DNA from: Prasinococcaceae sp. CCMP 1430
Taxonomy: Eukaryota; Plantae; Prasinodermophyta
NCBI GenBank assembly: GCA_013416795.1
Contig: RQSC01000032.1
Coordinates: 62,001-126,000 of the forward strand
DNA: 64,000 nt
Direction of reading: 5' to 3'
The notes under the pieces: model-generated
The model's input: the letters and a program-made list of their open reading frames with translations, nothing else
Database searches by the model: none
Told to the model about the DNA's origin: nothing
Program-made: the position numbers and the translations under genes
Part shown: piece by piece, positions 1 through 26,838 of the stretch
How the letters are laid out: the number at the start of each line of letters is the position of its first letter
How positions within the stretch are numbered: the stretch's first letter is position 1

Positions 1-1945
1 GCAGAGAGGGCGTATAGTAAAACTGAGGACGCACACCGGCATTGGAGGCAAGGAAAGCGCGCTCGTCGGCGTTCTCCCCGTCGTTCCTTTCAACCTCCTG
101 CTGCACGGAAGATGATGCGCGCACCCCCACGGCGCTGATGATTGCATCGAGAGCCTCGCCAACAGCCGCCTTGCGCTCGGCTGCATCGAGGTGCGCGCAC
201 ACTTCCGCGCGCTCGAGCACCGACGTGTCGCGCGCTCGCGATATGCCACGCGCGTGCACTGTCATCGCCGCGCCCCCTTTCGCGACCGTCGGCAGCGGCG
301 GATGCGTGCGCAGCGCCCAGCGCCTCGAAAAGCAGCCCGCGTGACCATCAGGCCGGAAAGCCACTGTGAATGTGCGGCGCTCGCCCGGCAGCAGAGAGCC
401 CTCGTCGGCGTTCAGCGTGAGGGCGCTTCCGGCTCCTCCTTGCCCGCTGGCAAAGGCGAGAGAGCTGACGGCACGTGAGCGCGTGACGCCGGGGACGGCG
501 ACAGGCTCGAGCTCATCCCACGCAAAGTACAGCACAGTTGTGCCAGCATTGGCGAGCTCAAAAGTCGCGCGTGAGGACTCATGCGCTCCGCAGGCGACGC
601 ACACGCGTGGCGTGTCCAGCTCGGCGGCGGGGCCCTCGACCAGGCCGCGAAGGCGCAGCGCGGTCGCCTCCGCTTGGGCGGCAATCGCCGCGGCCGCCGC
701 GCGCGCCTCGGCCTGTTCGGCGAGCGCGGCGCGTGCTTTGCACACCGCCTCCCAGCCACTCGGGTGGTACTGCTCGAGCTCCGCCTCGCATTCGGCCAAC
801 GTGACTACCGACTCGCCCATGGCGGACAACGCCGCCTCTACACTCACGCCGGTGACCTGCAGGCCACGCGCGTCGTCGTGGTCGGGCAGGTGGCCGACGA
901 GCTCGGAGATCTGGCGCGCGTACTGCTTCTTCTTGGCCTTGAATGTAGCGTCGTTAGACCAGTGCGTCTTCACCTCCGAGCGCGGCACTTTGGGCTTGGC
1001 GGCAAGCGGCCTGCGCACGAGCTCAACCTCTTCGGCTTGCGGCCTTTCCGGCACAGGGCAGAAAAGCCCCGAGAAGATGTTGCCCACGGGTACGAAGCGC
1101 GTCCAGTTATCACGCAGGCTCATGGTCCACTGGTCGGAGCCGCGGCGCCTTTCGGCAGGCACGGCCAGGTGCAGCATGTCGTTCTCCTCGCGGCGCTCGC
1201 GAAAGTCCTGGTGGCGCTCCATCACGAGCTCGCTGGGTTCCTTGTTGAATTCCTTGGCAAGTGCCTGCTGCACGGCTGACCACTCGGCTTCTTGGCGATC
1301 GAAGTGGTCCAGCGCGCGCTCCTCCGCACCCGCAATCACGCGCGCGCTGATCGTCGAGTTCAGGTCGGTCGTGCGCACACTGGCATCGGCGTCGGCCCCG
1401 AACGCCTGTGCGCGCGCCTCGCGGAGCCGGACTGCGACCTCGCCCGCCTGAAACCGCGCCTCCGAGCGGCGCGAGAACGCGTCGAGCAGCGCCTCTGCGG
1501 CAGCGGGTTCGATGTTGCCGAGAGCTTGCGCCTCAGCGGCTACTTCCGCGGTCGGGCTGAATGCGGCGCGCGAGCGCTGCTGCGTATCCCTGGTGGGCGA
1601 TGGGCTCGCCACGGGCGTGCTCGTCTGCGCGGGCGCGGAGCGCCGCTCGAGCTCGGCCTGGAACGCCGCCACATCGCCGAGCACGTTCGAGGCGTTGACC
1701 TCTCCACCGACCAACACTGCGTCTGCCACCGCCACCCCGTCCACACCACCGTCTGCGCTGCCACCTTCCGGTTGCGTCACCGGCGCCTCCGCCTGCTGCG
1801 CGGGAGGTGCGGCACCGTCCGCGGCCTGCCCCTCCGGCGGGGCAACGCGCCGGCGCACCTTGAGCGTGCGCCGCCCCGGCGGTGGCCCGGGCCGCACGAG
1901 CTTGTCGACAGCCGTGGGCTCTAGGTGCACGAGCACGTCCGTCAT
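1..1945 (-). CDS. MYCBP-associated protein (MYCBPAP/FAP147-like, ciliary central apparatus), 3' end outside the window
   Basis: Manual translation: ATG at 1945, open to position 1 with no stop, so absent from the ORF track. Contains QQALAKEFNKEPSELVMERHQDFRERREE, WTMSLRDNWTRFVPVGNIFSGLFCP, ELANAGTTVLYFAW and GSLLPGERRTFTVAF...WALRTHP, resembling the MYCBPAP family. Confidence 0.7.
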   Translation of the reverse strand, partial: MTDVLVHLEPTAVDKLVRPGPPPGRRTLKVRRRVAPPEGQAADGAAPPAQQAEAPVTQPEGGSADGGVDGVAVADAVLVGGEVNASNVLGDVAAFQAELERRSAPAQTSTPVASPSPTRDTQQRSRAAFSPTAEVAAEAQALGNIEPAAAEALLDAFSRRSEARFQAGEVAVRLREARAQAFGADADASVRTTDLNSTISARVIAGAEERALDHFDRQEAEWSAVQQALAKEFNKEPSELVMERHQDFRERREENDMLHLAVPAERRRGSDQWTMSLRDNWTRFVPVGNIFSGLFCPVPERPQAEEVELVRRPLAAKPKVPRSEVKTHWSNDATFKAKKKQYARQISELVGHLPDHDDARGLQVTGVSVEAALSAMGESVVTLAECEAELEQYHPSGWEAVCKARAALAEQAEARAAAAAIAAQAEATALRLRGLVEGPAAELDTPRVCVACGAHESSRATFELANAGTTVLYFAWDELEPVAVPGVTRSRAVSSLAFASGQGGAGSALTLNADEGSLLPGERRTFTVAFRPDGHAGCFSRRWALRTHPPLPTVAKGGAAMTVHARGISRARDTSVLERAEVCAHLDAAERKAAVGEALDAIISAVGVRASSSVQQEVERNDGENADERAFLASNAGVRPQFYYTPSL

Positions 1946-4923: not shown

Positions 4924-6863
4924 TCACATGTGTTCCTCCACGGCGAGCTCAGTGGCGGCCCAGCGCATGTAGCGCTGCGCCTGGAACGGCCTCGCCTTCT
5001 GCACGCGCTTTGCGGGCTGAAAGAACTCGTAGGCGCCCATGAACAGATGCAGGTAGGCAGCGGCCGCGGCAAAGCCAACGCCCATGAACCCGCCGACGCT
5101 GGCGTAGCACGCAAGCCGCTCGCGCAGCGAACGTCGCGGTTGTCCGAGTGCGTCCTGGTACACGACTTCTGTGCGCTTGGCCACGTCGGGCCACGAGTAC
5201 ATTGCGGCAACGCGCGCGTGCACTGACGCACGCGCGGTCTCGGGATGGGCGCGCTCTATGCCCTCCAACACTGCCGCAGCGAGGGCGCCTGCCTCGGGTT
5301 CTGCCAGCAGCATCAGGTCCGGCGGCAGAACCTGCGCGCGGCACGGGAACACCGACAGAAACGATGTCGCCATCCGAGTCCGCACGCGCTCGCGCTGGCG
5401 TCAGTGCAGGCATGGGATGTGCCCGCGCCCACCGAGCGGGTGGGGAGGCAGCAGACGATGCAGCAGATGGCGCTCTGTGTGTTCGTGCACGCGCGCAAAT
5501 TCGCACCTCCGGCACCCCCCCGACGCGTGTGCTGACTACCATGAGCCCGGCGGCAGCCGCCTCCACTACTGCCATGCAGAAGGCTTCGGTGAGCGAACAG
5601 CTGAGAAACACGCGTCCGCGGTTGAGCACACTGCACACGTCGTCGTGGCGCACGCCCCCCAGCAGCTCAACTCGACGCTGCAGGCCATGAAGCTCTACCA
5701 TCTGTTCGAGCTGCCCACGGCGTGGGCCATCGCCACCGATCACGAATCGCACGCCTGGGTGAGACGCGCACACTGCAGGCACCACCTGCACCAGCAGGTC
5801 AACGCCCTTACGGTAAGTCAGACGGTTCATCACCACCACCGTCAGGTAAGGGTCGGCGGAAGACACATCTGTACCAGTGCCTCCAGCGTCATCAATCGCG
5901 CTGGACGCGACTTCGCCACTGCTGCTGACGTCGGCTTGGCCGTCGCTCTCATGTCCGTGGCACGAATCAGGTCTCTCGCCAGAGTGCGACGCCTCGCGGG
6001 GCGCAAATTGCTCGGCATCCACGGCATTGGGAATGACGTACACCAGCTCTGGCCGCACGCCACTGCGCAGCACTGAGTTCTCCTTCGAGACGTGGGATAC
6101 ACACACCACCGCCTGAATTTCCGCCAGAGTCCACCTGCGGTCGGCGCGGGCCATTGGCGTGCAGGACAGGCACAGAAGCGCGCCAGCAGCAACATGCGCC
6201 GGTCAATCACACACCCTGTATCGGTCAACGATCGCCAGCGCGCGTCGTTGCACCCGCGCTGGAGTGCGCGCATGCCCACGCACCTTAGGAGTTGGTTGGT
6301 GAGTATGCTGGCGGTATCCGCGAACCCGAAGAGCGAGTGATCGGTGAAGACGCACGGGATACCCAGAGCACGAGCGGCGTGCACGGCCTCGTGGGCGAGC
6401 GCCGAGCAGTTCTGGTGCGCGTGAACGACGTCAATCGCTTCGCGCAGTGCGACGGCACGCACGAGCGCCGCGCTGCCGAAGGCAGTTGGCAGCGACGTGC
6501 CCCAAGGCATCTCGAGCCTCGGCGCGTAGTACACCTGCGCATGTAAGGGTTGCAACACATTTGCACGAGCAGGCGAGGGTGTGAGCGGTGTGCACGTTGG
6601 AGCGTTGCCATGCGCGCGCGCACGAGCGCCTGCAAGTGTGAGCCCGTGCGTGTGCGCGATTGCAAGATCCCCTCCCGCACCTTGAGCCCGTTTGTCATCC
6701 ACCTCACACCCCTGCGTGCGCCGCGCGAGCGCGTGAGAACACACACGGCGTGCCCGCGTGCGATGAGCCCCTGCGCGAGCGAGTACACGTGGCACTCGAC
6801 GCCACCGGCATCAGGGTAGAAGAAGTCGGTCGACATCATGATGCGCAGGGGCCGGGCCGCCAT
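4924..6863 (-). CDS. PIGA: Phosphatidylinositol N-acetylglucosaminyltransferase subunit A (GPI biosynthesis), 4 exons (6681-6863, 6284-6534, 5507-6134, 4924-5331)
   Basis: Motifs [47 protein letters not shown] and [14 protein letters not shown]. Canonical GT-AG junctions keep the frame. Confidence 0.95.
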
Positions 6864-7126
6864 CTCGGCGTGCGCGCCGCGGGCGCTCGCGCTAGCGCCT
6901 GAGCGCGTGCACGGCGCGGCCCAGCATGCAGCGCGCGCGCGGGCGCGCAGCAGCGCCTGCCCACGCGGGCGCGCCTCTCCACACGCGTGGCGCAGGAGCG
7001 CTCCTCGGGGGCGGGCGCGCGCCGGCCGGCGCCGCGCAGGCCGGCGCTGCAACGCACCTTGCCGCGTTGCTCCGGGCTTGCCACAGTCCCCACCCCACCC
7101 CGTCGCCGGCCATCTTGGCGACCGCG

Positions 7127-8698
7127 ATGGCATTTTCTTCCGCTGTGCGCATCGCCGACGTCAACGACTTCATCGCGCCCTCGCAGGCATGCGTCGTGGG
7201 CATCAATGGTGGTAGCAAAGACGCCAAGGCGGCGTACGCGCTCGAGACAGCAGCTGTAGTGGGCGACGCGGGCGCCGTGCAGATTCACGGCCGCGACGAC
7301 GACCTGAGCATGGCGCCCACACCGTCGCCGGGCGGATTTGGGTTTGCGCAGGCGGGGGTGGATGGAGGCACGACTGCAGTCAAGGTGACGCTCAACGACT
7401 GCCTCGCGTGCAGCGGCTGCGTGACGAGCGCGGAGACGGTGCTCATGGAGGCACAGAGCGGCGAGCAGCTGCTCACGGCGCTAGACGCCGCGGCACAAGG
7501 GGCGGCGGGCGCCGCGCGGGTAGTGGTGTCGCTCGCGCCGCAGACTATCGCGAGCGTGGCAGCTGCTGCTGGCCTGAGCGTGGCCGTTACGCGGCGACGA
7601 CTCTGTGCGGCGCTCAAGCGCGGCCTCGGCGCAGCGGCGGTGTACGACGTGGCGGAGGGCCGTGACCTCGCCCTGGCGGAGGCGTGCCTGGAGTTCGTCC
7701 AGCGCTACCGTGGCCGGGCAGCAGGCGCGCCGCTGCCGCTGCTCGCATCGTCATGCCCGGGCTGGGTGTGCTACGCAGAGAAAACGGCCGGTAGCTACGT
7801 GCTGCCACACATCTCGACCGTGAAGAGCCCGCAGGCAGTTGCCGGGGCGCTCATCAAACGGGCAGCTTCGGGTGCAGGCGCGAGGGTATTGCACGCCGCA
7901 GTGATGCCATGCGCCGACAAGAAGCTGGAGGCCAGCCGTGACGAACTCACACTCGGCGGTGAGCCCGAGTGCGATCTGGTGCTTACTACAATCGAGCTGC
8001 AGGACATGCTGCGCACCCGAGGCATTGATATTGCTGCTGGAGGGGGCCCAGAGGATGACGTTGATGCGCTCATCGAGCTGGTCGCTCCACGCGCCGCGGC
8101 GGACGGCGGTACGGAGACGATGGACATTGACGGTCTCGCGGGGGACGCGCAGCGGGCATCGGCACCACTCGGAGGCTCGGGCGGGTGGGTGGAAACAGTC
8201 GCGCGCTTTGCATGCACGGAACTCTTTGGCACCCCGCCACCGCCAGGGCCGCTGCCGCTCGCGCCGCTGCGCAAGCGCTCAGGGGCTGACTTCCAAGTGT
8301 GCGAGCTGCCACCTCCACCAGGGGTCGACATGCCGCCGCTTCGATTCGCCACCGTGTACGGGTTCAAGTCCATCCAAGGTCTGCTGCGCAAATTGAAGAC
8401 CAAGACCTGCGACTACGATTACGTGGAAGTGATGGCCTGCCCGGGTGGCTGCCTGAATGGCGGCGGCCAGTTGCGCCCGCCCGAGGGCGTCACGGCACGA
8501 GAGAGGCTCGCCGAGGTGGACAGCGCGTACCACTCGGCAGCAGAGCAGGACCAGATGCCATGGCGCGCGCCGCTGGTGCGCGCTACCCACGGCGCGCTCG
8601 GCGGCGATGGCGGCGCGTCCACAGCCGCGAGGGAGGCGTTGCGCACCAGCTACAAGCTCCGAGAGAAGCCAGCCGCGCTGCAGGCGACCAACTGGTGA
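7127..8698 (+). CDS. NAR1: Cytosolic Fe-S assembly factor NAR1/NARFL (hydrogenase-like)
   Basis: [62 protein letters not shown] and [17 protein letters not shown]. Confidence 0.95.
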
Positions 8699-18768: not shown

Positions 18769-20136
18769 TCACAGCGTCTTGGGCAGCACGCTGCCACTGG
18801 CGCCACCGTTGCCACCCCAGCAGCTGGATGGCGCCAGCAGCGTCACGGCTAGCAGGGCCACGCCTGCGATGACGAGGCCGCCGCCGAGCCAGCGCTGCCA
18901 GCCTGAGGTGGCTCCCCTCCCGAGCACCCCCACCGCCGAGGTGGAGGTCTCGCGCACGTTGCGGCGGCTAATGAGCTCATGGGCGACGTCTGTGGCCTGA
19001 GCGCTTTCCTCGGCTGCCGCATGGGCCTGCCTGAGGCGCTGGGCGCCCTCGCGGAGCCGCGCGGCGGCCTCGTCAGACTCTCGGGTGGGGTCGAGCAGCG
19101 GGTCGTGCGGCCAGCCTCGGCGGTCGCGCTGGCGACGCATTGTGTCAGCGATCATCTGCTCGCGCTCCGGCGTTCCGATCTTCGTCCCGTTGAGCAGCGA
19201 CAAGTCCACAGTCGACTCGTCCTCAAAGCCGGGAAGGCCGAGTTTATAATACGGCGGAACTGCCGCGATCGCCGCATCGAGCGTGATGTTCCACGGGACC
19301 GGGGAGAAGTGCAGAAAGGCGTTGGCGTACCAAGCACCCCTGAGCACGGTGGGGCGGGCGTGCACGAGCTTGCCGCCCTCGTAGTGGAGCATCTCGCCTG
19401 CGTCCAAATTCACGGCGTGGTACCGGCCAAAGTGATCCCTGAGCACGAGCGGCCATGGTTCGAGGATGTCGTGGGCGATGTGCAAGACAGAGCTGATGAT
19501 GTGCGTCTCCTTTTTGTCGAGGTGCTGGGCTAGCACGGTCTGGTCGAAGTAGACCCTCACGCCGTACAGCGCGTTGAACTGGAGCTTGCACTTGCACCAG
19601 CGCTCGTGGATGGGCTGCAGCGTCTCGATGATCTCCTTCTGCAGCTCCTTTGGCAGCCAGATCATGGCAGGGAGGGCTGCGCGCGAGGTGATTGCCGAGG
19701 ACGGATCCGTCACTCCCTCCTCAATCTTCATCTTGTCCACGTTGTCGTGCACAAACTTGTAGAGCTTGTTGTAGAGAGGCCTCGGCATCTCTTCCACCTG
19801 CAAGCCTTTGGCCGTCATATTTGGTATGAAGAGCTCCTGTCCGAACACGCGCCAGTTATCGAAGCGCTTGTTGGGATCCATCTCCTTCATGAGCTCGGCC
19901 TCGCGCTGGGCGAGTTCGCGCGGGTCGCGGAAGTTGTACGGCGAGTCCAGTGGCCACTCGTGCCCCCAGTTCCGGTAGTACTTCGCATCTCGCTCCGTGC
20001 TGTCCCAGCCCGCCGAGTGCGCCTTGGGTGCGCTCGTGACGAGCAGGAGGAAGGCGAAGAGCAGCGCCCCGGTCGCGGCAGCCGCCCGTTGACAAGCACC
20101 GCCTCGTCGCGCTCGACGCGCTGGCAGCGCGGCCAT
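18769..20136 (-). CDS. Secreted or membrane-anchored 2OG-Fe(II) oxygenase-like protein (algal prolyl-hydroxylase-like family)
   Basis: Signal-like GALLFAFLLLVTSA, YGVRVY...HLD (HxD), EPWPLVLRDH...YEGGKLVHARP...YANAFLHF, and a C-terminal TM segment WLGGGLVIAGVALLAVTLL. Confidence 0.7.
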   Translation of the reverse strand: MAALPARRARRGGACQRAAAATGALLFAFLLLVTSAPKAHSAGWDSTERDAKYYRNWGHEWPLDSPYNFRDPRELAQREAELMKEMDPNKRFDNWRVFGQELFIPNMTAKGLQVEEMPRPLYNKLYKFVHDNVDKMKIEEGVTDPSSAITSRAALPAMIWLPKELQKEIIETLQPIHERWCKCKLQFNALYGVRVYFDQTVLAQHLDKKETHIISSVLHIAHDILEPWPLVLRDHFGRYHAVNLDAGEMLHYEGGKLVHARPTVLRGAWYANAFLHFSPVPWNITLDAAIAAVPPYYKLGLPGFEDESTVDLSLLNGTKIGTPEREQMIADTMRRQRDRRGWPHDPLLDPTRESDEAAARLREGAQRLRQAHAAAEESAQATDVAHELISRRNVRETSTSAVGVLGRGATSGWQRWLGGGLVIAGVALLAVTLLAPSSCWGGNGGASGSVLPKTL

Positions 20137-20279
20137 CGCGGACTCTGCCGGCACGCCCCCGCGACAGCTGGAGTCGAGTCCCGATGCGCACTCAACACCC
20201 CTCTCGCAGCGATCGGGCGGGGGCGCCGCCACTCGCGCTGGGCCGCCGCGCCGCTCCTCGCCCGCCCGCGCGCCCGCCC

Positions 20280-20803
20280 NNNNNNNNNNNNNNNNNNNNN
20301 NNNNNNNNNNNNNNNNNNNNNNNNNNNNNNNNNNNNNNNNNNNNNNNNNNNNNNNNNNNNNNNNNNNNNNNNNNNNNNNNNNNNNNNNNNNNNNNNNNNN
20401 NNNNNNNNNNNNNNNNNNNNNNNNNNNNNNNNNNNNNNNNNNNNNNNNNNNNNNNNNNNNNNNNNNNNNNNNNNNNNNNNNNNNNNNNNNNNNNNNNNNN
20501 NNNNNNNNNNNNNNNNNNNNNNNNNNNNNNNNNNNNNNNNNNNNNNNNNNNNNNNNNNNNNNNNNNNNNNNNNNNNNNNNNNNNNNNNNNNNNNNNNNNN
20601 NNNNNNNNNNNNNNNNNNNNNNNNNNNNNNNNNNNNNNNNNNNNNNNNNNNNNNNNNNNNNNNNNNNNNNNNNNNNNNNNNNNNNNNNNNNNNNNNNNNN
20701 NNNNNNNNNNNNNNNNNNNNNNNNNNNNNNNNNNNNNNNNNNNNNNNNNNNNNNNNNNNNNNNNNNNNNNNNNNNNNNNNNNNNNNNNNNNNNNNNNNNN
20801 NNN
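20280..20803. other. Assembly gap (524 N)
   Basis: Run of N between two divergent genes. Confidence 1.
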
Positions 20804-23800
20804 GCGGCCGCCAAGGCGGTGGCGGTGGGGGGTGGCGATGCAGCGGGCGACGGCGGCGCGGAGAGCGCGGACGCGATGGGCGGCGCGGAGGAGGCGACGC
20901 CCTCGCCTGCTCCAGGCTCTGGCGAACGCGAGGGCGGCGGCGCTCAAAGCGCGCCCGCCGACGCGTCCGGTGGCGGCGAGTCGCCCGACGCCACAGGGAA
21001 GCGCAAACGCGTCGTCAAGGCCAAGACCCAGGAGCAGAGCGACAAGCTCAACGCTCTCTGGGAGCTCACCGAGGATCCCACACAAGAGGAGAGGGAAGCG
21101 CTCGCGAAGGAGCTCGGCTTGGAGCGCAAGGTCGTCACCAAGTGGTTCAACTCGAAGCGCCTCCGGAAGAAGCGTAAGGGCGCGGGGGGCGATTGGGGCG
21201 CCACGCCCGCACCGCGCGCCGCCTCGGGCGCCTCGGGCGAAGAGGGCACGCCGACTGGCCAGGGATTCGCGACTCCGGGCGCGGCCGGCTCCAGCCCGAT
21301 GGGCGCGCTCGATACCAGGGAGCAGCGCGCGGCGGGCGCCGAGGCATGCGCGGCCGAAATTCTCGAGTTGGACGCAATGCTCGATTGCTCTGCCGATGCG
21401 GCCAAGGAGGCCGCCCAGGAAGCCGCAGCGGCAGCCGCCGCCATCGAGGGAGCGACCCTGCAATCGATTGCGGCGGGGGCCGCCGAGGGCTCGCCGCTGC
21501 CGCTCATGGGCCTCGCCACCATCGTGCTCAACGCGGCCAAGGCGTCTGGCCTCGAGGGCGTAGGGCCCATGCAGGTGATGCCCGCGATCGTCGGCGTGGC
21601 GGACCGGACTGCCGTGGGTGCTCAGCCAGCTGTCGGCACGGACGCGATGGCAGACACGTCGTCATCGTGCGTGTGGCGCTGGCACTGCAAGGACCTCAGC
21701 CAGCTGTGCGACGCCAGCCGGAAAGCCCAGGCCGCGGGCGCCCGCATCGTGTGCGCGCAGGCGGCCGCGCGGCGCGCGGCGCTCGCCGAGATGGCGGAGG
21801 CGCTCGCGCTGGTCATGCAGGCCCAGGCGGAGAGCCAGGAGAGCCAGAGCCTGGAGGCCGCGGCTGCTGTGTACTCCGCGGAGGCGCGCCTGGCCAAGGC
21901 GCAGAACATGCTCAAGGGCACGAAGACCGCCGCGAGCATCGCCGCGAAGACCGAGCAGGTCATGCAGTCCGCGGCACAGAAGCAGGCGAGGCTAGAGGAG
22001 CTCGAGGCTGAGAAGGCCCGCAAGGCCGCGGAACGCGCCGCCAAGAAGGCCGAGCTCGACGCAGAGAGGGCAGCCAAAAAGGCCGCGCTGGATGCGGAGC
22101 GGGAGGCCAAGCGGGCCAAGGAGGAAGCGGAGAAGGCCAAGCGCGAAGAGGAGCGGCTTCGCAAGCTGAAGGAGCGCGAGGAGAAAGAGGCCGAGAGGCG
22201 CGCGCTCCGCGAGGCCAAGGAAGCGGAAAAGGCTGCCGCCGACCAGGCCAAGCGCGCGGAGGAGGATAGACTGGCCAAGGCCAAGGCCAAGCAGCGCAAC
22301 CTGATGTCGAGCTTCTTCAAGAAGCCCGCCGCAGCCGCTGTGGGCAAGGATTCTACCCCTGAGGGGCGCGGGCCTGCCGGCCCGGCCGGGGTGGCGAGCC
22401 CAAGCCCCAAAGGCGAGCGGCCGCTCTTCGTGAAGCCAAACGAGTACATGTACACGACCTTCAGGCCGCCACCGCTCGCGTCTGAGGCAGACGCCTCGAC
22501 CCCCGTGGTGCTGCCAATCCGAAACGGCAGGCGCACGCCTGCCACCCAGTGGTACAAGCGCCGCGCCGCGCCTGGGTGGCAGAAGATCGTGGCACCCGCG
22601 CGCGAGCTGCTGCTGTACAGCGCCACAGGCTCGGGTCTGGAGGAGACGCGCCAGGAGCGTCGCCGCCTGGATTCTGCGCTTCCCAAGGACGCAAGTGCGC
22701 CGGCGCCGCACGCCGACGGCAACGAGGACGATGACTGCATGATGATGGATGCTGCCCAGCCCGCCGGTGCCGGCATGGAGTCGCACAGGCAAGCCGAGGG
22801 CCCGCGCGCTCCCGGCGTGTTCAAATACCTAAACTTTCATATGGTGCTTGACGAGGATGGCGAGTGGGTCAACACCAATCGGCCGGCCTACCACGGAAAC
22901 AGGGTGCAGTGGGAGACACATGGCGCCAGACTGAGCTCGACCGCTGGCGGCGGGCCGAGCGCCCGCAACCCTTTCAGAAAGCACGATGAGGTTGACTACG
23001 AGGACTACTCGGACTTCGAATGGGAGGACGAGGGGGAGGGTGAAGAGATCGGGAGCGATAATGAGATGGATGCGGACCCGGCCGACAACTCCCCAGCTGG
23101 CAGCGAGGTTGACTCTTTCATCGTCGGAGACGACTGCCTGTCTGAAGGCGCTGTTGATGACGATGAAGACATGCACGACTGCGCCGAGTCACAGGAAACC
23201 GTCGCGGGGCCAGGCGACGTACCAGCGGACGCGCTGCGGCTGCTGCAGCGCTACAACAGCGCGCTTGCGCGTGCAAAGGCAAACGGCCGTGCGGTGGTGG
23301 TGCAGTCTGGCACCGAAAATGCTCACTTCCTGTCGGCGTTCGCGCCGCGCATGATGAGCCCGGACGTGTCAATCGCCACTGGGGTGGACCAGGAGCGGGA
23401 GGTCGAGGAGGCCGAGGCCGTTGCTGAGGCTGCAAAGGCGGCCGCGAAGGCCGCTGAGGCAGCGGTGAAGGCTGCGGCCGCGCCGCCCAAAGCTCCCAAG
23501 GAGGCTGCCAAGTTCAGCGCGGAACAGCTTGCCATGCTCAAGGCATTCGTCCAGGAGCAGCGCGACGCCGGCAATGTGACCATGACCAAGAAGAAGTACG
23601 AGCAGGAATTCGCCGCGATGAGTGGCCTGCCCAAGGTGACCGTGCAGAGGAAGCTCATGGAGGTATTGGAAAATCGCCCCGGCGAGAAAGGCTTCTTCTT
23701 CAAGGAGTCGATCGTCATCGGCGACGAGGGCCTCGCCCCTGCCGCGGGCAGCGAAGATGGTTCGGCCGCTGCCGCAGCGACGCCGGACGCCACGCCGGAC

Positions 23801-25087
23801 GCCACGCCGAAGGCCACGCCGAGTCCCGCTGCGAAGCTCGCCGCGAAGGGGACGCCAGGGCAGGGGGCGACGCCTGAGCGGACCCCGCCATCTGGCCACC
23901 GGTCCATCGCCGCCATGTTCGCTCAGGCCGCGAGTCCCAAGCCCAGCCCCAAGACTCCAGCCTCTGCCGTAGCCCCGGTACGATTCGACCTCCTGCAGAC
24001 CAGCGCCCCGGAGGACGCCAACGGCAGCTCTGTTGTGGACTTCGACGAGGTCATCTCACGGGCCGATGAGGCAGCAAGGACGAGCGACGAACCGCACGTT
24101 GATGAGCACTTTGGGGTCTTCGCCGCGGAAACGCTCGGCGGCGAGGCCGGCGCGATCAAGGCCCTGCGCGCGCGCACCGTGCGCAGCATGGTAGGGCGCA
24201 TGGGTGATCCGGAGTGCCCCACCAACCTACGCGCGTCGCTCTGCCAGGCCCTCTACTGCGTCACTGTGTGCCTCGGGGACGTCTCATCCAAGACACACGG
24301 GACGGCCGACGATGTGAAGGGCCAGGCGCAGGACGCGGATGCCGCCATCACCGCCTCGGATCTCGTCGACACTCCCGGGCTCTTTGATGCCATGCGCACC
24401 TGCGCCGAGGCGAACGACGTGCTATCCGCACGCAGGTGCCTGATGCTGATCGGTGCTCTCGCGCGCAGGAGCCCAGGGAAGGCTGCCACCCGGGTGCTGA
24501 TGGCTCTGGCGGAGCCCCACTGGCTTCGTGCCTTGACCGCCGCTGCCGAAAAGCACAACGACGGTGACTTTCCAACCGCGAACAAGGGCGCCTACGTAGC
24601 TAGCGCGCTGCTCACCGACGAGGATGCTGCTGGCGCAGCCGTCACGTCGGGTGGCAGCCGCTGCCTACTTGATGCGCTCATTGCCGCGCTCTGCAGCGTC
24701 GGCACCGCCGCTGCTGCCAAGGCTGAATCGGCGGCCGCTCGAAAGAAGAATGTGCCCAAGAGCACGCGCACCGTGGCGAAGCTCGCGATGAATGCGCTCT
24801 GTGGCGCGATGGTGCACGTGGGAATCCCGGACGTCAGGCCCGCAGTGGAGTGCGCTCGAAGGCTCCTTTCCGCACATGGCCTGCTTGGGGCCCCGGCGGC
24901 CGAGCAGGCCCTCACATTCGCCAACGAGCTCGCCGCTGCAGACGCGGAGGCGCGATTGGCTGCTGACACAGATGGGTTGCTGGCCGCGCTGCGCGCTCTC
25001 GAGGCAGATGAGGCACTTGGCGCGCGCGCGACGCACGCGGCGCGCGCGCTTGAGAAGGCCGCGGTGCCTGCAGCGGCGTGCACGTGA
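20804..25087 (+). CDS. Chromatin assembly factor 1 subunit A (FAS1/CHAF1A/Cac1-like) with an N-terminal homeodomain; 5' end may lie in the gap
   Basis: One ORF, open from the gap edge (first ATG 20876). Homeodomain about 20999-21180, K/E/R coiled coil, PIP-like QRNLMSSFF, CAF1A block FKYLNF...RPAYHG...RNPFRKHDEVDYEDYSDFEWEDE, WHD-like segment about 23510-23670, then a helical tail. Confidence 0.85.
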   Translation, partial: AAAKAVAVGGGDAAGDGGAESADAMGGAEEATPSPAPGSGEREGGGAQSAPADASGGGESPDATGKRKRVVKAKTQEQSDKLNALWELTEDPTQEEREALAKELGLERKVVTKWFNSKRLRKKRKGAGGDWGATPAPRAASGASGEEGTPTGQGFATPGAAGSSPMGALDTREQRAAGAEACAAEILELDAMLDCSADAAKEAAQEAAAAAAAIEGATLQSIAAGAAEGSPLPLMGLATIVLNAAKASGLEGVGPMQVMPAIVGVADRTAVGAQPAVGTDAMADTSSSCVWRWHCKDLSQLCDASRKAQAAGARIVCAQAAARRAALAEMAEALALVMQAQAESQESQSLEAAAAVYSAEARLAKAQNMLKGTKTAASIAAKTEQVMQSAAQKQARLEELEAEKARKAAERAAKKAELDAERAAKKAALDAEREAKRAKEEAEKAKREEERLRKLKEREEKEAERRALREAKEAEKAAADQAKRAEEDRLAKAKAKQRNLMSSFFKKPAAAAVGKDSTPEGRGPAGPAGVASPSPKGERPLFVKPNEYMYTTFRPPPLASEADASTPVVLPIRNGRRTPATQWYKRRAAPGWQKIVAPARELLLYSATGSGLEETRQERRRLDSALPKDASAPAPHADGNEDDDCMMMDAAQPAGAGMESHRQAEGPRAPGVFKYLNFHMVLDEDGEWVNTNRPAYHGNRVQWETHGARLSSTAGGGPSARNPFRKHDEVDYEDYSDFEWEDEGEGEEIGSDNEMDADPADNSPAGSEVDSFIVGDDCLSEGAVDDDEDMHDCAESQETVAGPGDVPADALRLLQRYNSALARAKANGRAVVVQSGTENAHFLSAFAPRMMSPDVSIATGVDQEREVEEAEAVAEAAKAAAKAAEAAVKAAAAPPKAPKEAAKFSAEQLAMLKAFVQEQRDAGNVTMTKKKYEQEFAAMSGLPKVTVQRKLMEVLENRPGEKGFFFKESIVIGDEGLAPAAGSEDGSAAAAATPDATPDATPKATPSPAAKLAAKGTPGQGATPERTPPSGHRSIAAMFAQAASPKPSPKTPASAVAPVRFDLLQTSAPEDANGSSVVDFDEVISRADEAARTSDEPHVDEHFGVFAAETLGGEAGAIKALRARTVRSMVGRMGDPECPTNLRASLCQALYCVTVCLGDVSSKTHGTADDVKGQAQDADAAITASDLVDTPGLFDAMRTCAEANDVLSARRCLMLIGALARRSPGKAATRVLMALAEPHWLRALTAAAEKHNDGDFPTANKGAYVASALLTDEDAAGAAVTSGGSRCLLDALIAALCSVGTAAAAKAESAAARKKNVPKSTRTVAKLAMNALCGAMVHVGIPDVRPAVECARRLLSAHGLLGAPAAEQALTFANELAAADAEARLAADTDGLLAALRALEADEALGARATHAARALEKAAVPAAACT

Positions 25088-25327: not shown

Positions 25328-26838
25328 TTAGACGCCCTCCTGTCCGAACTCGGCGGTGAACCTGTCATGGACCTCTAGGTCGTCCTTGGACACTGTCGGG
25401 CGCGCGCGCTCGAGCACCGTTTCGAAGTCCGCACGGCTGATGAGTGGGACCTGGACGCGATCAGCAAACCCCTTGGCGGCCAAGTCCATCAGAGTGGCCG
25501 AAAAGGCACCCTTGGCCCGCGGCGCGCAAGGGGCGTAGTACACACCCGGCCCAGCTGGACCGTCGGCCTGCACCTGCCTAAAGTGCGTGGCCTCTTGCGT
25601 CTTGCGGACAGGCTGCATGAGCACGTCCTTCACCGCCACGGACACGTCGCTGCCGGAGAAGCCTTCAGTCATGTCTCCAAGGTCACGGAAGTCGTCTTCC
25701 GTGAGCGAGCTCGGAGTGTCGCCGAGGTGCACCTTGAACATGTGCGCGCGCGCGTGCGGGTCCGGCAGCGGGATGTAGATGCGCTTGTCGAAGCGCCTGC
25801 GCAGCGCCTGGTCGAGGTTGTATGGCAGGTTGGTCGCCGCTAGCACCAACACATTGTCCGTGCCCCCTCCTACGCCCTGCATCTGCACCATGAACTCAGT
25901 TTTGATTCGCCGCGCCGCCTCAGACTCCCCCTCTCCACGCGCGGAGCACAGTGAGTCGATCTCGTCGATGAAGATAATCGAGGGCGCCTTCTCACGCGCC
26001 ATCTCAAAGAGCTGCGCCACGAGCTTTTCACTCTCACCCATCCACTTCGACACCAGGTCCGATGAGCTGACGCTGAAGAAGGTCGAGTCGGCCTCGGTGG
26101 CCACGGCTTTGGCCAAGTAGGACTTGCCCGTGCCCGGTGGGCCGTAGAGGAGGAAGCCCTTCCACGGCTTGCGCTTGCCCGTGAAGAACTGCGGGAATTT
26201 CACGGGCAGGATGACCGCCTCCTTGAGCGCGTCCTTTGCCGCGTCCAGGCCGGCCACGTCATCCCACTTGATGTTGGGCTTCTCGCTCACGATGGCACCA
26301 GACATGGCCTCGCGGAGCTTTTCCGTCTCCTTGTCAGCGCCCTTCGCGTTGCCCCCACCTCCTCCAGCCCCCCCATTTGCGCCGGCGCCGCGCGACAGCT
26401 GCGCGTTCGCTCCGCCACCAGCGCTGTCGCCCCCGGCCGCCGCTGGTTGTCTGCCGTCGAGCACCCCCTTGAGAGCTTCGGCCCTGTCAAGGTACTCCTT
26501 GAACTTCTCGGTGAGCGTCTTCTTGATGGCGGGATTCTTCTCGTACTTGAGCGCGGTCTTGAAGTACTCGAGTGCGGTCACGTACAGCTGCGCGGGAGCG
26601 GCGGGGGGCGCGGCACGCGCGGGGCAAAAGCGCGCGTGAAACGCGCGCGTCAGCACGGAGGCGCGCATGTCGCAAGGAGTCCGCACGATGGTGACTCGAC
26701 GATCGCGCGTCACGCCGCATCTGGAGGCCCCGCGCGACAGCACACCTTGTACGCCGACTCGTAGTAGCCCGCGGTGTCCTCAGCGACGGCCTTCTTCACA
26801 TACTCGATGGCCGTCTCCTTGAAGTTGCTGAAGGACAT
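25328..26838 (-). CDS. VPS4: AAA ATPase VPS4/SKD1, 2 exons (26746-26838, 25328-26587)
   Basis: MIT domain, Walker [24 protein letters not shown] and C-terminal FTAEFGQEG. Confidence 0.97.

Follow-up and report, generated by a model that had tools for sequence, protein, structure and literature searches.

The window analysed here (64,000 nucleotides of contig RQSC01000032.1, Prasinococcaceae sp. CCMP 1430) contains a gene whose product is probably a CAF-1 large subunit (a FAS1/p150/Cac1 orthologue) to which a low-specificity DNA-binding homeodomain and a peptide-binding armadillo platform have been joined. Every part of the CAF-1 layout is present in the protein (plant-type N-domain, KER, PIP-like motif, acidic core and winged helix), and both additions, the homeodomain and the armadillo-like domain, are kept in the same gene by relatives. 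The locus is assigned to Prasinoderma coloniale or a very close relative (Prasinodermophyta), and the neighbouring genes fall in 90% clusters with P. coloniale PRCOL_00000046 and PRCOL_00000043; the first-pass annotation had spoken of a green alga, which is right at the level of the kingdom, the host being more exactly Prasinoderma, a marine lineage that branches deeply. Coordinates of all features are collected in the table.

Table. Features of the homeodomain-CAF-1 locus (positions in the window)
Feature	Position	Strand	Basis or remark
Assembly gap, 524 N	20280..20803	.	Conceals gene 5' end and promoter
Homeodomain-CAF-1 large subunit ORF, visible part	20804..25087	+	Stop at 25085-25087
60-residue non-TALE homeodomain, basic N-terminal arm, basic tail	20999..21178	+	Pfam, sequence, AF2
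Low-complexity linker, predicted disordered	21179..21316	+	pLDDT <50; indels relative to orthologue
Plant-FAS1-type N-domain: helices and beta hairpin, CVWRWHCKD, then long helix	21317..21850	+	Alignment, pLDDT 82-95
KER (Lys/Glu/Arg/Ala-rich) helix	21971..22285	+	PF11600
PIP-like motif QRNLMSSFF, directly after KER	22292..22318	+	ORF aa 492-500
CAF1A acidic (ED) core, histone- and p60-binding region of CAF-1 large subunits	22763..23260	+	PF12253
Cac1-type winged helix	23501..23716	+	hhalign
Armadillo/HEAT-like alpha solenoid, ~350 residues	24041..25078	+	AF2, Foldseek

The reading frame, described at first pass as a single uninterrupted ORF, indeed runs from 20819 to 25087 on the plus strand through 1422 codons with zero stops, and stays open further upstream to 20804, the first base past the run of N; because it remains open up to the edge of that run, the true start codon is hidden. 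The gap, whose closure had been called for, is bridged by Tara scaffold L001, on which the gene called at L001:6329-10765 gives 56 extra N-terminal residues that are not conserved in the longer form of the orthologue. Besides the window, the unbroken ORF is found in three independent contigs of the same species, and two Logan contigs with the full protein represent genomic DNA and not transcripts, because Vps4 is also on them. Short contigs from metatranscriptome libraries, which may contain DNA, tile 21040-21605 (from the homeodomain to inside the N-domain) as well as other parts of the gene, with no joints; these were the only RNA matches, and no full-length or bridging transcript was seen among them. 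Ten candidate reference models for this ORF were looked up by exact match, and none was present.

These data bear on the possibility that a small homeobox gene and a neighbouring CAF1A gene were read as one through the gap, a missed intron or stop, or a chance GC-rich ORF. Such a misreading would be helped by the long spurious ORFs present in all frames of GC-rich DNA, by the location of the 5' end within the gap and by the lack of a bridging transcript among the short metatranscriptome contigs, and it might seem to be favoured by the calling of the gene of one relative, L008, as two ORFs. It is nevertheless highly improbable, and close to refuted: the gap ends upstream of the homeodomain, which is followed in the same frame, ~45 residues on, by the FAS1-specific N-domain; the ORF is continuous in the three other same-species contigs and in the relatives P0002, P0008 and P0034; the break in L008 falls after the PIP-like motif, not at the junction of homeodomain and CAF1A; and polymorphic codons among four near-identical haplotypes (28 synonymous vs 11 non-synonymous) give a pN/pS of ~0.13 across the ORF. 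The CAF-1 large subunit described here is taken to be encoded by one intronless gene.

Around the LWxWExRD motif, the N-domain can be aligned with a FAS1-like protein of Colocasia and with every algal relative; it matches no Pfam family, and a PDB search gave no convincing match for it (Z ~7.5-8, generic helical hairpins only), a search that was dominated by the homeodomain, for which reason no claim of a new fold is made. The KER coil reported at first pass corresponds to PF11600 (CAF1A_acidic/KER), which scores 25.8 bits in the window ORF (aa 389-512), just under the cut-off of 26.4, and 27.3 bits in the near-identical protein P0001, a score at the threshold in a region of biased composition. 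The motif QRNLMSSFF had been called PIP-like, and it stands at the expected place directly after KER, where every relative, as well as CAF1A of plant and tick, has an xxFxSFF-type motif; its spacing, however, is non-canonical when counted from Gln, the aromatic pair lying one residue beyond Qxx[LIM]xx[FY][FY], and canonical when counted from Arg. The same layout of KER followed by PIP occurs in S. pombe Pcf1 (PMC10942606). The acidic CAF1A block is recognized by PF12253 (CAF1A_dimeriz; 32.4 bits vs a cut-off of 25, aa 686-754), and a profile of the algal cores finds the human CHAF1A chains 7y5k, 7y5u and 8iqf at E 2e-24. No direct Pfam match was obtained for the winged helix; the WHD-like segment was recovered instead by hhalign against Cac1_C-bearing sequences (PF21796), with a probability of 96.5% and E 9e-10.

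The homeodomain string quoted in the first-pass annotation is present in the ORF and is recognized by Pfam Homeodomain (PF00046) at 34.3 bits vs a cut-off of 22.9 (ORF aa 68-119), with sequence matches to DUX4 and engrailed structures at E 1e-8. WFNSKR in helix 3 pairs with WFQNRR/WFQNER of DUX4 with no loop gaps; the domain is therefore non-TALE and its position 51 is Ser, as had been proposed, in place of Asn51. Residue 50 is Asn, residue 52 is Lys and position 8 is Lys, and the alignments show the core and backbone-contact residues L16, aromatic 20, W48, F49 and R53. The AF2 model has a confident three-helix fold (pLDDT 85-91) that superimposes on solved homeodomains with an rmsd of 0.6-0.9 A (VIA Z 9-9.9), and haplotype polymorphism inside the domain is synonymous or conservative. 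The comparisons made here did not place the algal homeodomain in any of the 14 plant homeobox classes.

Relatives extend this picture. The orthologue P0002 (51% identity) also adjoins Vps4 and has the same order of parts end to end, and in three more distant algal lineages the homeodomain lies within the same gene; in P0008 and P0034, of lower-GC lineages, homeodomain and CAF1A form one called gene. The search of other algae for the same architecture that had been suggested returned P0002, P0008, P0034 and L008, whereas a homeodomain occurs in 0 of the 12 non-algal CAF1A-core proteins recovered, in keeping with the initial statement that CAF-1 large subunits have none. Whole-protein and core word searches were swamped by KER-like low-complexity candidates and returned 1-3 proteins, so that missing named orthologues are not to be equated with absence; an exhaustive profile search gave 18 matches, each of them made by the acidic core, and the composition of the Prasinoderma sequences is too biased for such a search to reach far. 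No relatives were found in the JGI metagenome contigs scanned, and an ESM Atlas feature search gave nothing usable.

Within the homeodomain, P0001 and P0002 share L16, P26, L34, G39, L40, V45, W48 and F49, and WFNSKR and KKRK are fully identical. Across the family W48 and R53 persist, F49 is kept in four of five lineages (Leu in the fifth), and the basic arm and tail are retained; positions 50 and 54 vary, and position 51 is N in P0008, K in P0034, S in the window protein and in P0002, and Q in L008. The P0008 domain scores 49.6 bits and has a canonical WFENRR, the degenerate L008 domain reaches 18.7 bits, below the Pfam cut-off, the degenerate version in P0035 is not detected by Pfam, and P0022 has no homeodomain and keeps everything else; because of these low or absent scores the homeodomain may be dispensable or decaying.

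Such variation bears on the reading of the homeodomain. If it directed CAF-1 to specific sequences (repeats, silenced loci, origins), in sequence-targeted assembly or in a double role as transcription factor, then the complete fold with its basic N-terminal arm, the canonical WFENRR of P0008, and a helix 3 identical between two species only 51% identical overall, which is compatible with a lineage-specific recognition code, would all be accommodated. Yet the main base-reading residue differs among the five lineages, together with positions 50 and 54, which argues against a conserved TAAT-type readout, and some members have a degenerate domain or have lost it; sequence-specific targeting is weakened for both reasons, and we regard it as rather unlikely. 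The varying position 51 and the degenerate members are compatible either with non-specific DNA binding or with a protein-binding role. Substitution of Asn51 usually weakens DNA binding by homeodomains, and the domain may no longer bind DNA at all, serving as a protein-interaction surface, as an NLS carrier through its basic arm or tail, or surviving as a slowly decaying relic of the fusion. The replaced Asn51, Lys at position 8, a Pfam score lower than that of P0008, and the degeneration in L008 and P0035 and loss in P0022 point in this direction; the conserved core and helix 3 of P0001 and P0002, the confident AF2 fold, the synonymous or conservative polymorphism, and retention of R53 together with the basic flanks, parts that touch the DNA backbone in solved homeodomains, point away from it, and we regard this reading as unlikely. 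The preferred reading remains a homeodomain that binds DNA with specificity that is probably low or altered, because the backbone-contacting features persist and the base-reading Asn51 is not kept.

The C-terminal helices had been estimated at ~400 aa and described as ARM-like. The armadillo-like fold is upheld by AF2 (pLDDT 83.5, pTM 0.82; right-handed stacked helical repeats), and the length is corrected to ~350 residues. Foldseek matches designed armadillo proteins (E 6e-5, TM 0.5-0.68), and Atlas comparison gives TM 0.62-0.72 to ARM/HEAT clusters; Arm and HEAT repeat profiles of Pfam gave no match in P0001 residues 1100-1478 at E up to 10. As modelled, the solenoid resembles armadillo/HEAT proteins in fold only. 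Its polymorphic codons are 10 synonymous and 0 non-synonymous, and the CAF-1 large subunits of plants, yeast and human have no such domain.

Taken together, the parts suggest that the protein would still act as a replication-coupled H3-H4 depositor kept at forks via PCNA, with the homeodomain as a putative third DNA-contacting module beside KER and WHD, where it could raise DNA affinity or help to sense free DNA beside the deposition site; the armadillo domain would probably offer a groove for an extended peptide, for example a histone tail or a partner. The genes of p60 and p48, the partners with which a CAF-1 large subunit forms its complex, lie outside the window. The first-pass suggestion that the homeodomain may be an additional DNA-binding module for targeting or spacing nucleosomes is a plausible one, since CAF-1 is already dependent on such modules, KER and WHD (PMC10335832, PMC10942606). 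A bolder proposal, that nucleosome assembly in Prasinodermophyta and allied picoalgae is partly sequence-directed, WFNSKR steering CAF-1 and the armadillo domain reading a histone tail or partner, is distinctly unlikely; if true, it would make this CAF-1 a natural 'programmable' histone chaperone and its homeodomain a new class dating from near the base of green plants. The way in which CAF-1 locates and measures free DNA in the wake of the fork is being actively studied, and a CAF-1 with a putative third DNA-binding fold offers a ready comparative experiment on the effects of affinity and specificity on tetrasome placement. For homeodomain evolution, the family is a case of recruitment into core chromatin machinery, in a phylum that diverged earlier than the separation of Chlorophyta and Streptophyta (PMC7455551), and one in which Asn51 is, unusually, free to vary, and the armadillo-like tail, a second uncharacterised addition, may point to a new CAF-1 partner.

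Compared with typical non-TALE homeodomains (DUX4, engrailed, LMX1A), the algal domain has the same 60-residue spacing, three-helix fold, W48, F49, R53 and basic N-terminal arm; unlike them, it has Ser51 in place of the near-invariant Asn51, with Asn50 and Lys52, and resides in a histone chaperone rather than a transcription factor. The CAF-1 mechanism includes binding to DNA through accessory modules (PMC10335832, PMC10942606, PMC5404915), and the KER helix and winged helix are the only such modules described so far (PMC10335832, PMC10942606). In the literature searched, no paper on algae joins a homeodomain or homeobox with CAF-1, FAS1 or CAF1A; for each Ostreococcus species, Mukherjee et al. 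(PMC2775110) record a single non-TALE homeobox gene as 'uncharacterized', with no description. The plant DDT-class proteins, in which a homeodomain is joined to DDT-WSD chromatin-remodeller partner domains (Mukherjee et al. 2009, PMC2775110), provide a green-plant precedent, unicellular algae included, for a homeodomain on chromatin machinery and not on an activation or repression domain; their partner domains are different, and the likeness is one of analogy alone. Human CHAF1A (p150), S. cerevisiae Cac1 and S. pombe Pcf1 share the order KER, PIP (PIP-like in the alga), ED core and WHD with the algal protein, CHAF1A also through the core profile match given above, and differ from it in having no homeodomain, FAS1-type N-domain motif or armadillo domain; the N-terminus of CHAF1A carries instead PIP1 and an HP1-binding motif. 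Plant FAS1 (represented by Colocasia esculenta P0007, MQL76201.1) shares the N-domain with its LWxWExRD...LP motif, a KER with a Q/K-x-x-F/L-M-x-x-F motif behind it, the acidic CAF1A core and the C-terminal Cac1-type winged helix. Unlike the algal protein, however, it has no homeodomain and ends soon after the WHD, so that the algal protein is longer by ~120-180 residues in front (homeodomain and arm) and by ~450 residues behind (linker and armadillo-like domain).

The plus-strand ORF joins a homeodomain in frame to the large subunit of CAF-1 (FAS1/p150/Cac1). The homeodomain (ORF residues 68–119) scores 34.3 bits in Pfam, where the curated cut-off is 22.9, and the homeodomain string quoted in the first-pass annotation occurs in the ORF exactly as given. 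Sequence matches to homeodomains of solved structure include DUX4 (E 1e-8), engrailed and LMX1A, among others; in the alignment to these the loop between helices 1 and 2 is ungapped, which makes the segment a typical 60-residue non-TALE homeodomain, as had been claimed from the sequence. In the same alignment WFNSKR falls on WFQNRR/WFQNER, giving Asn at position 50, Ser at 51, Lys at 52 and Arg at 53, and thus bearing out the earlier report of Ser51. An AlphaFold2 model of residues 105–400 of P0001 (the product of a near-identical gene on the Tara scaffold L001), based on 7 aligned sequences, gives the homeodomain a pLDDT of 85–91 and fits crystal homeodomains at 0.6–0.9 Å over 50–52 residues (VIA Z 9–9.9); the alignments under the structure models are shallow (6–7 sequences).

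It is very unlikely that the fusion is an artefact in which neighbouring genes were merged into one reading: the ORF runs without interruption in the window, in three further contigs from this species and in relatives from three other lineages; the FAS1-type-specific domain starts at most ~45 residues after the homeodomain; and across four haplotypes the whole ORF carries 28 synonymous versus 11 non-synonymous polymorphic codons, a pN/pS of ~0.13 (1062 synonymous and 3207 non-synonymous sites). In the armadillo region of the same four haplotypes, all 10 polymorphic codons are synonymous and 0 are non-synonymous. The evidence is weakest at the transcript level: contigs from marine metatranscriptome libraries map to 21040–21255, 21255–21403, 21455–21605 and later parts, and none of them contains a splice joint, but at 150–280 bases each they are too short to prove a single mRNA, and their source libraries may include carried-over DNA.

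The first-pass description of one uninterrupted ORF, free of stops, was upheld. Because the ORF is still open at the downstream edge of the N run (no stop upstream of 20819 back to 20804, the first base past the run), the 5′ end of the gene is hidden in the window. The gap, whose closure the first-pass annotation had called for, was closed with L001 (20.4 kb, Tara Oceans metagenome), which carries the same gene gapless, with ~20 substitutions in 4269 bases relative to the window. P0001, from L001, has 1478 residues, 56 more at the N-terminus than the window ORF; these show no conservation in the longer form of the orthologue P0002, and the Met at 20876 is therefore a possible true start. Under either start choice the homeodomain is downstream of the translation start. 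Just past the homeodomain, ORF residue 126 is Trp in the window (TGG, position 21194) and Gly (GGG) in all three other haplotypes, as also in two contigs whose runs are RNA or presumed to be RNA; Trp126 is either a strain-specific change or an assembly base error.

Coordinates of the fusion ORF, its neighbours and related features
Feature	Window	Other sequence	Strand	Remarks
Homeodomain–CAF1A ORF	20819..25087		+	1422 codons, uninterrupted
Assembly gap	20280–20803			524 N
FAS1-type N-domain	21317–21850	P0007 ~95–215		~180 residues
Vps4 (MIT, AAA, Vps4_C), convergent neighbour	25328–26743	L001:11006–12516	-	
Divergent upstream neighbour, running into gap	18769–20279		-	455 residues on L001
Orthologous gene on L008, two called ORFs		L008:4011–5771 and 6001–7539		separated by a stop and ~230 bases

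The remainder of the protein has the full layout of a plant-type CAF-1 large subunit; the homeodomain is followed by a disordered linker, a FAS1-type N-terminal domain (N-domain), the Lys/Glu/Arg/Ala-rich helix (KER), QRNLMSSFF, the acidic core, a winged helix and an alpha solenoid. In the N-domain (pLDDT 82–95) helices and a beta hairpin lead into a long helix; the domain contains CVWRWHCKD and aligns with the N-terminal region of P0007, a Colocasia esculenta FAS1-like protein (MQL76201.1; LWCWEVRDLKLLP), and with all algal relatives; the motif LWxWExRD...LP is common to the algal proteins and the plant protein. The Pfam scan found no model for this N-domain, which seems to be a plant-lineage domain, not yet described, at the N-terminus of CAF-1 large subunits. 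In the P0007 model the acidic block is present twice, likely a gene-model artefact. The Pfam scan, proposed in the first-pass annotation, placed Homeodomain and CAF1A_dimeriz (32.4 bits, cut-off 25; residues 686–754) above their cut-offs and CAF1A_acidic, covering the KER region, just below (25.8 bits, cut-off 26.4; residues 389–512). QRNLMSSFF lies immediately C-terminal to KER, the place held by the PCNA-interacting (PIP) motif of S. pombe Pcf1 (PMC10942606), and relatives have xxFxSFF-type motifs there. The algal acidic-core profile matches the human CHAF1A structures 7y5k, 7y5u and 8iqf (E 2e-24), and profile–profile comparison matches the segment earlier termed WHD-like (P0001 951–1022) to the Cac1_C winged helix of CAF1A proteins, those of plants among them (probability 96.5%, E 9e-10). 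The last ~350 residues, rather than the ~400 first estimated, are modelled as an alpha solenoid (pLDDT 83.5, pTM 0.82) whose best matches are armadillo repeat proteins (Foldseek E 6e-5, Atlas TM ~0.7), confirming the proposed ARM-like helices; the Pfam scan detected no sequence family in it.

The host is identified as Prasinoderma coloniale or a very close relative (Prasinodermophyta, not a mamiellophyte), since the L001 neighbours Vps4 and WD40 cluster at 90% identity with P. coloniale PRCOL_00000046 and PRCOL_00000043 and the window GC of 66–70% matches the 69.8% of P. coloniale (PMC7455551). The MIT domain of Vps4 is encoded partly in the main ORF and partly in a short ORF upstream of it, a pattern that points to a single putative intron close to the 5′ end of that gene. 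The divergent upstream neighbour has a signal- or anchor-like N-terminus and no Pfam family on record; as both divergent genes lose their 5′ ends in the N gap, their shared promoter region is absent from the window.

The same architecture, which the first-pass annotation suggested seeking in other algae, is matched fully by P0002 (1409 residues, 51% identical), with identical part order including WFNSKR and Vps4 also adjoining. The more distant algal relatives P0008 (1265 residues) and P0034 (1318 residues; the two are 42% identical over the searched region 490–1265) share the homeodomain and CAF1A within a single called gene each, on contigs of ~48% GC where the adjoining gene is plastid OEP24. 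Pfam scores these two homeodomains at 49.6 and 40.1 bits, and that of L008, a locus in synteny on a metagenome contig of 771 kb, at a weak 18.7 (WLCQRR). In L008 one ORF holds homeodomain, N-domain, KER and PIP-like motif, and the core lies in the following one; the break may reflect an intron, an error in the long reads or a genuine split. Synteny (G-patch, CUE, CAF1A gene, OEP24) is kept between L008 and L004, another lower-GC lineage. In the GC-rich relative P0035 (1581 residues) the homeodomain-like stretch is degenerate, with an insertion. Residues ~118–260 of P0035 (on L009) apparently hold two consecutive degenerate homeodomain-like units, versus one in other relatives, with helix-3 remnants WCKSFK and WLKHHRR; Pfam detected neither unit. 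P0022/P0005 (UniRef A0A7S3XD52) have the entire architecture, armadillo-like tail included, without the homeodomain. Among CAF1A-core proteins from an exhaustive search, a homeodomain is present in one of 16 (P0008) and in none of the 12 outside the algal family. A further public CAF1A-core protein, P0018, has its core joined to a ribosomal L5e fragment, likely a merged model.

In the literature searched, no description was found of a CAF-1 large subunit bearing a homeodomain, whether from algae or from other organisms; 'chromatin' and 'homeobox' are both absent from the main text of the P. coloniale genome paper (PMC7455551), and for each Ostreococcus species Mukherjee et al. list a single non-TALE homeobox gene, uncharacterised and given with no details (PMC2775110). 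Automatic Pfam tables already show the Homeodomain and CAF1A pair on metagenomic proteins; the combination is therefore machine-visible, yet undescribed.

Residue 51 differs between lineages, being Asn in P0008, Lys in P0034, Ser in P0001 and P0002 and Gln in L008; Trp48 and Arg53 are kept in all five, Phe49 and the basic N-terminal arm in four (L008 has Leu49 and a weaker arm). Identities between the P0001 and P0002 homeodomains cover the structural core and the whole WFNSKR..KKRK stretch. Because of this pattern, the homeodomain is read as folded and constrained, and probably independent of the canonical Asn51–adenine contact. It may target CAF-1 sequence-specifically, or it may no longer bind DNA; the most economical interpretation, which we infer for both parts, is that the homeodomain is an added DNA-contacting module and the solenoid a peptide binder. 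The algal large subunit would thereby have gained a further DNA contact of weak or lineage-specific base specificity and also a peptide-binding solenoid. CAF-1, which deposits H3–H4 behind the fork, requires DNA contacts made by KER and, in some species, by the winged helix (PMC10335832, PMC5404915); the winged helix of S. pombe CAF-1 does not bind DNA (PMC10942606), and the set of DNA-binding modules in CAF-1 thus differs between lineages.
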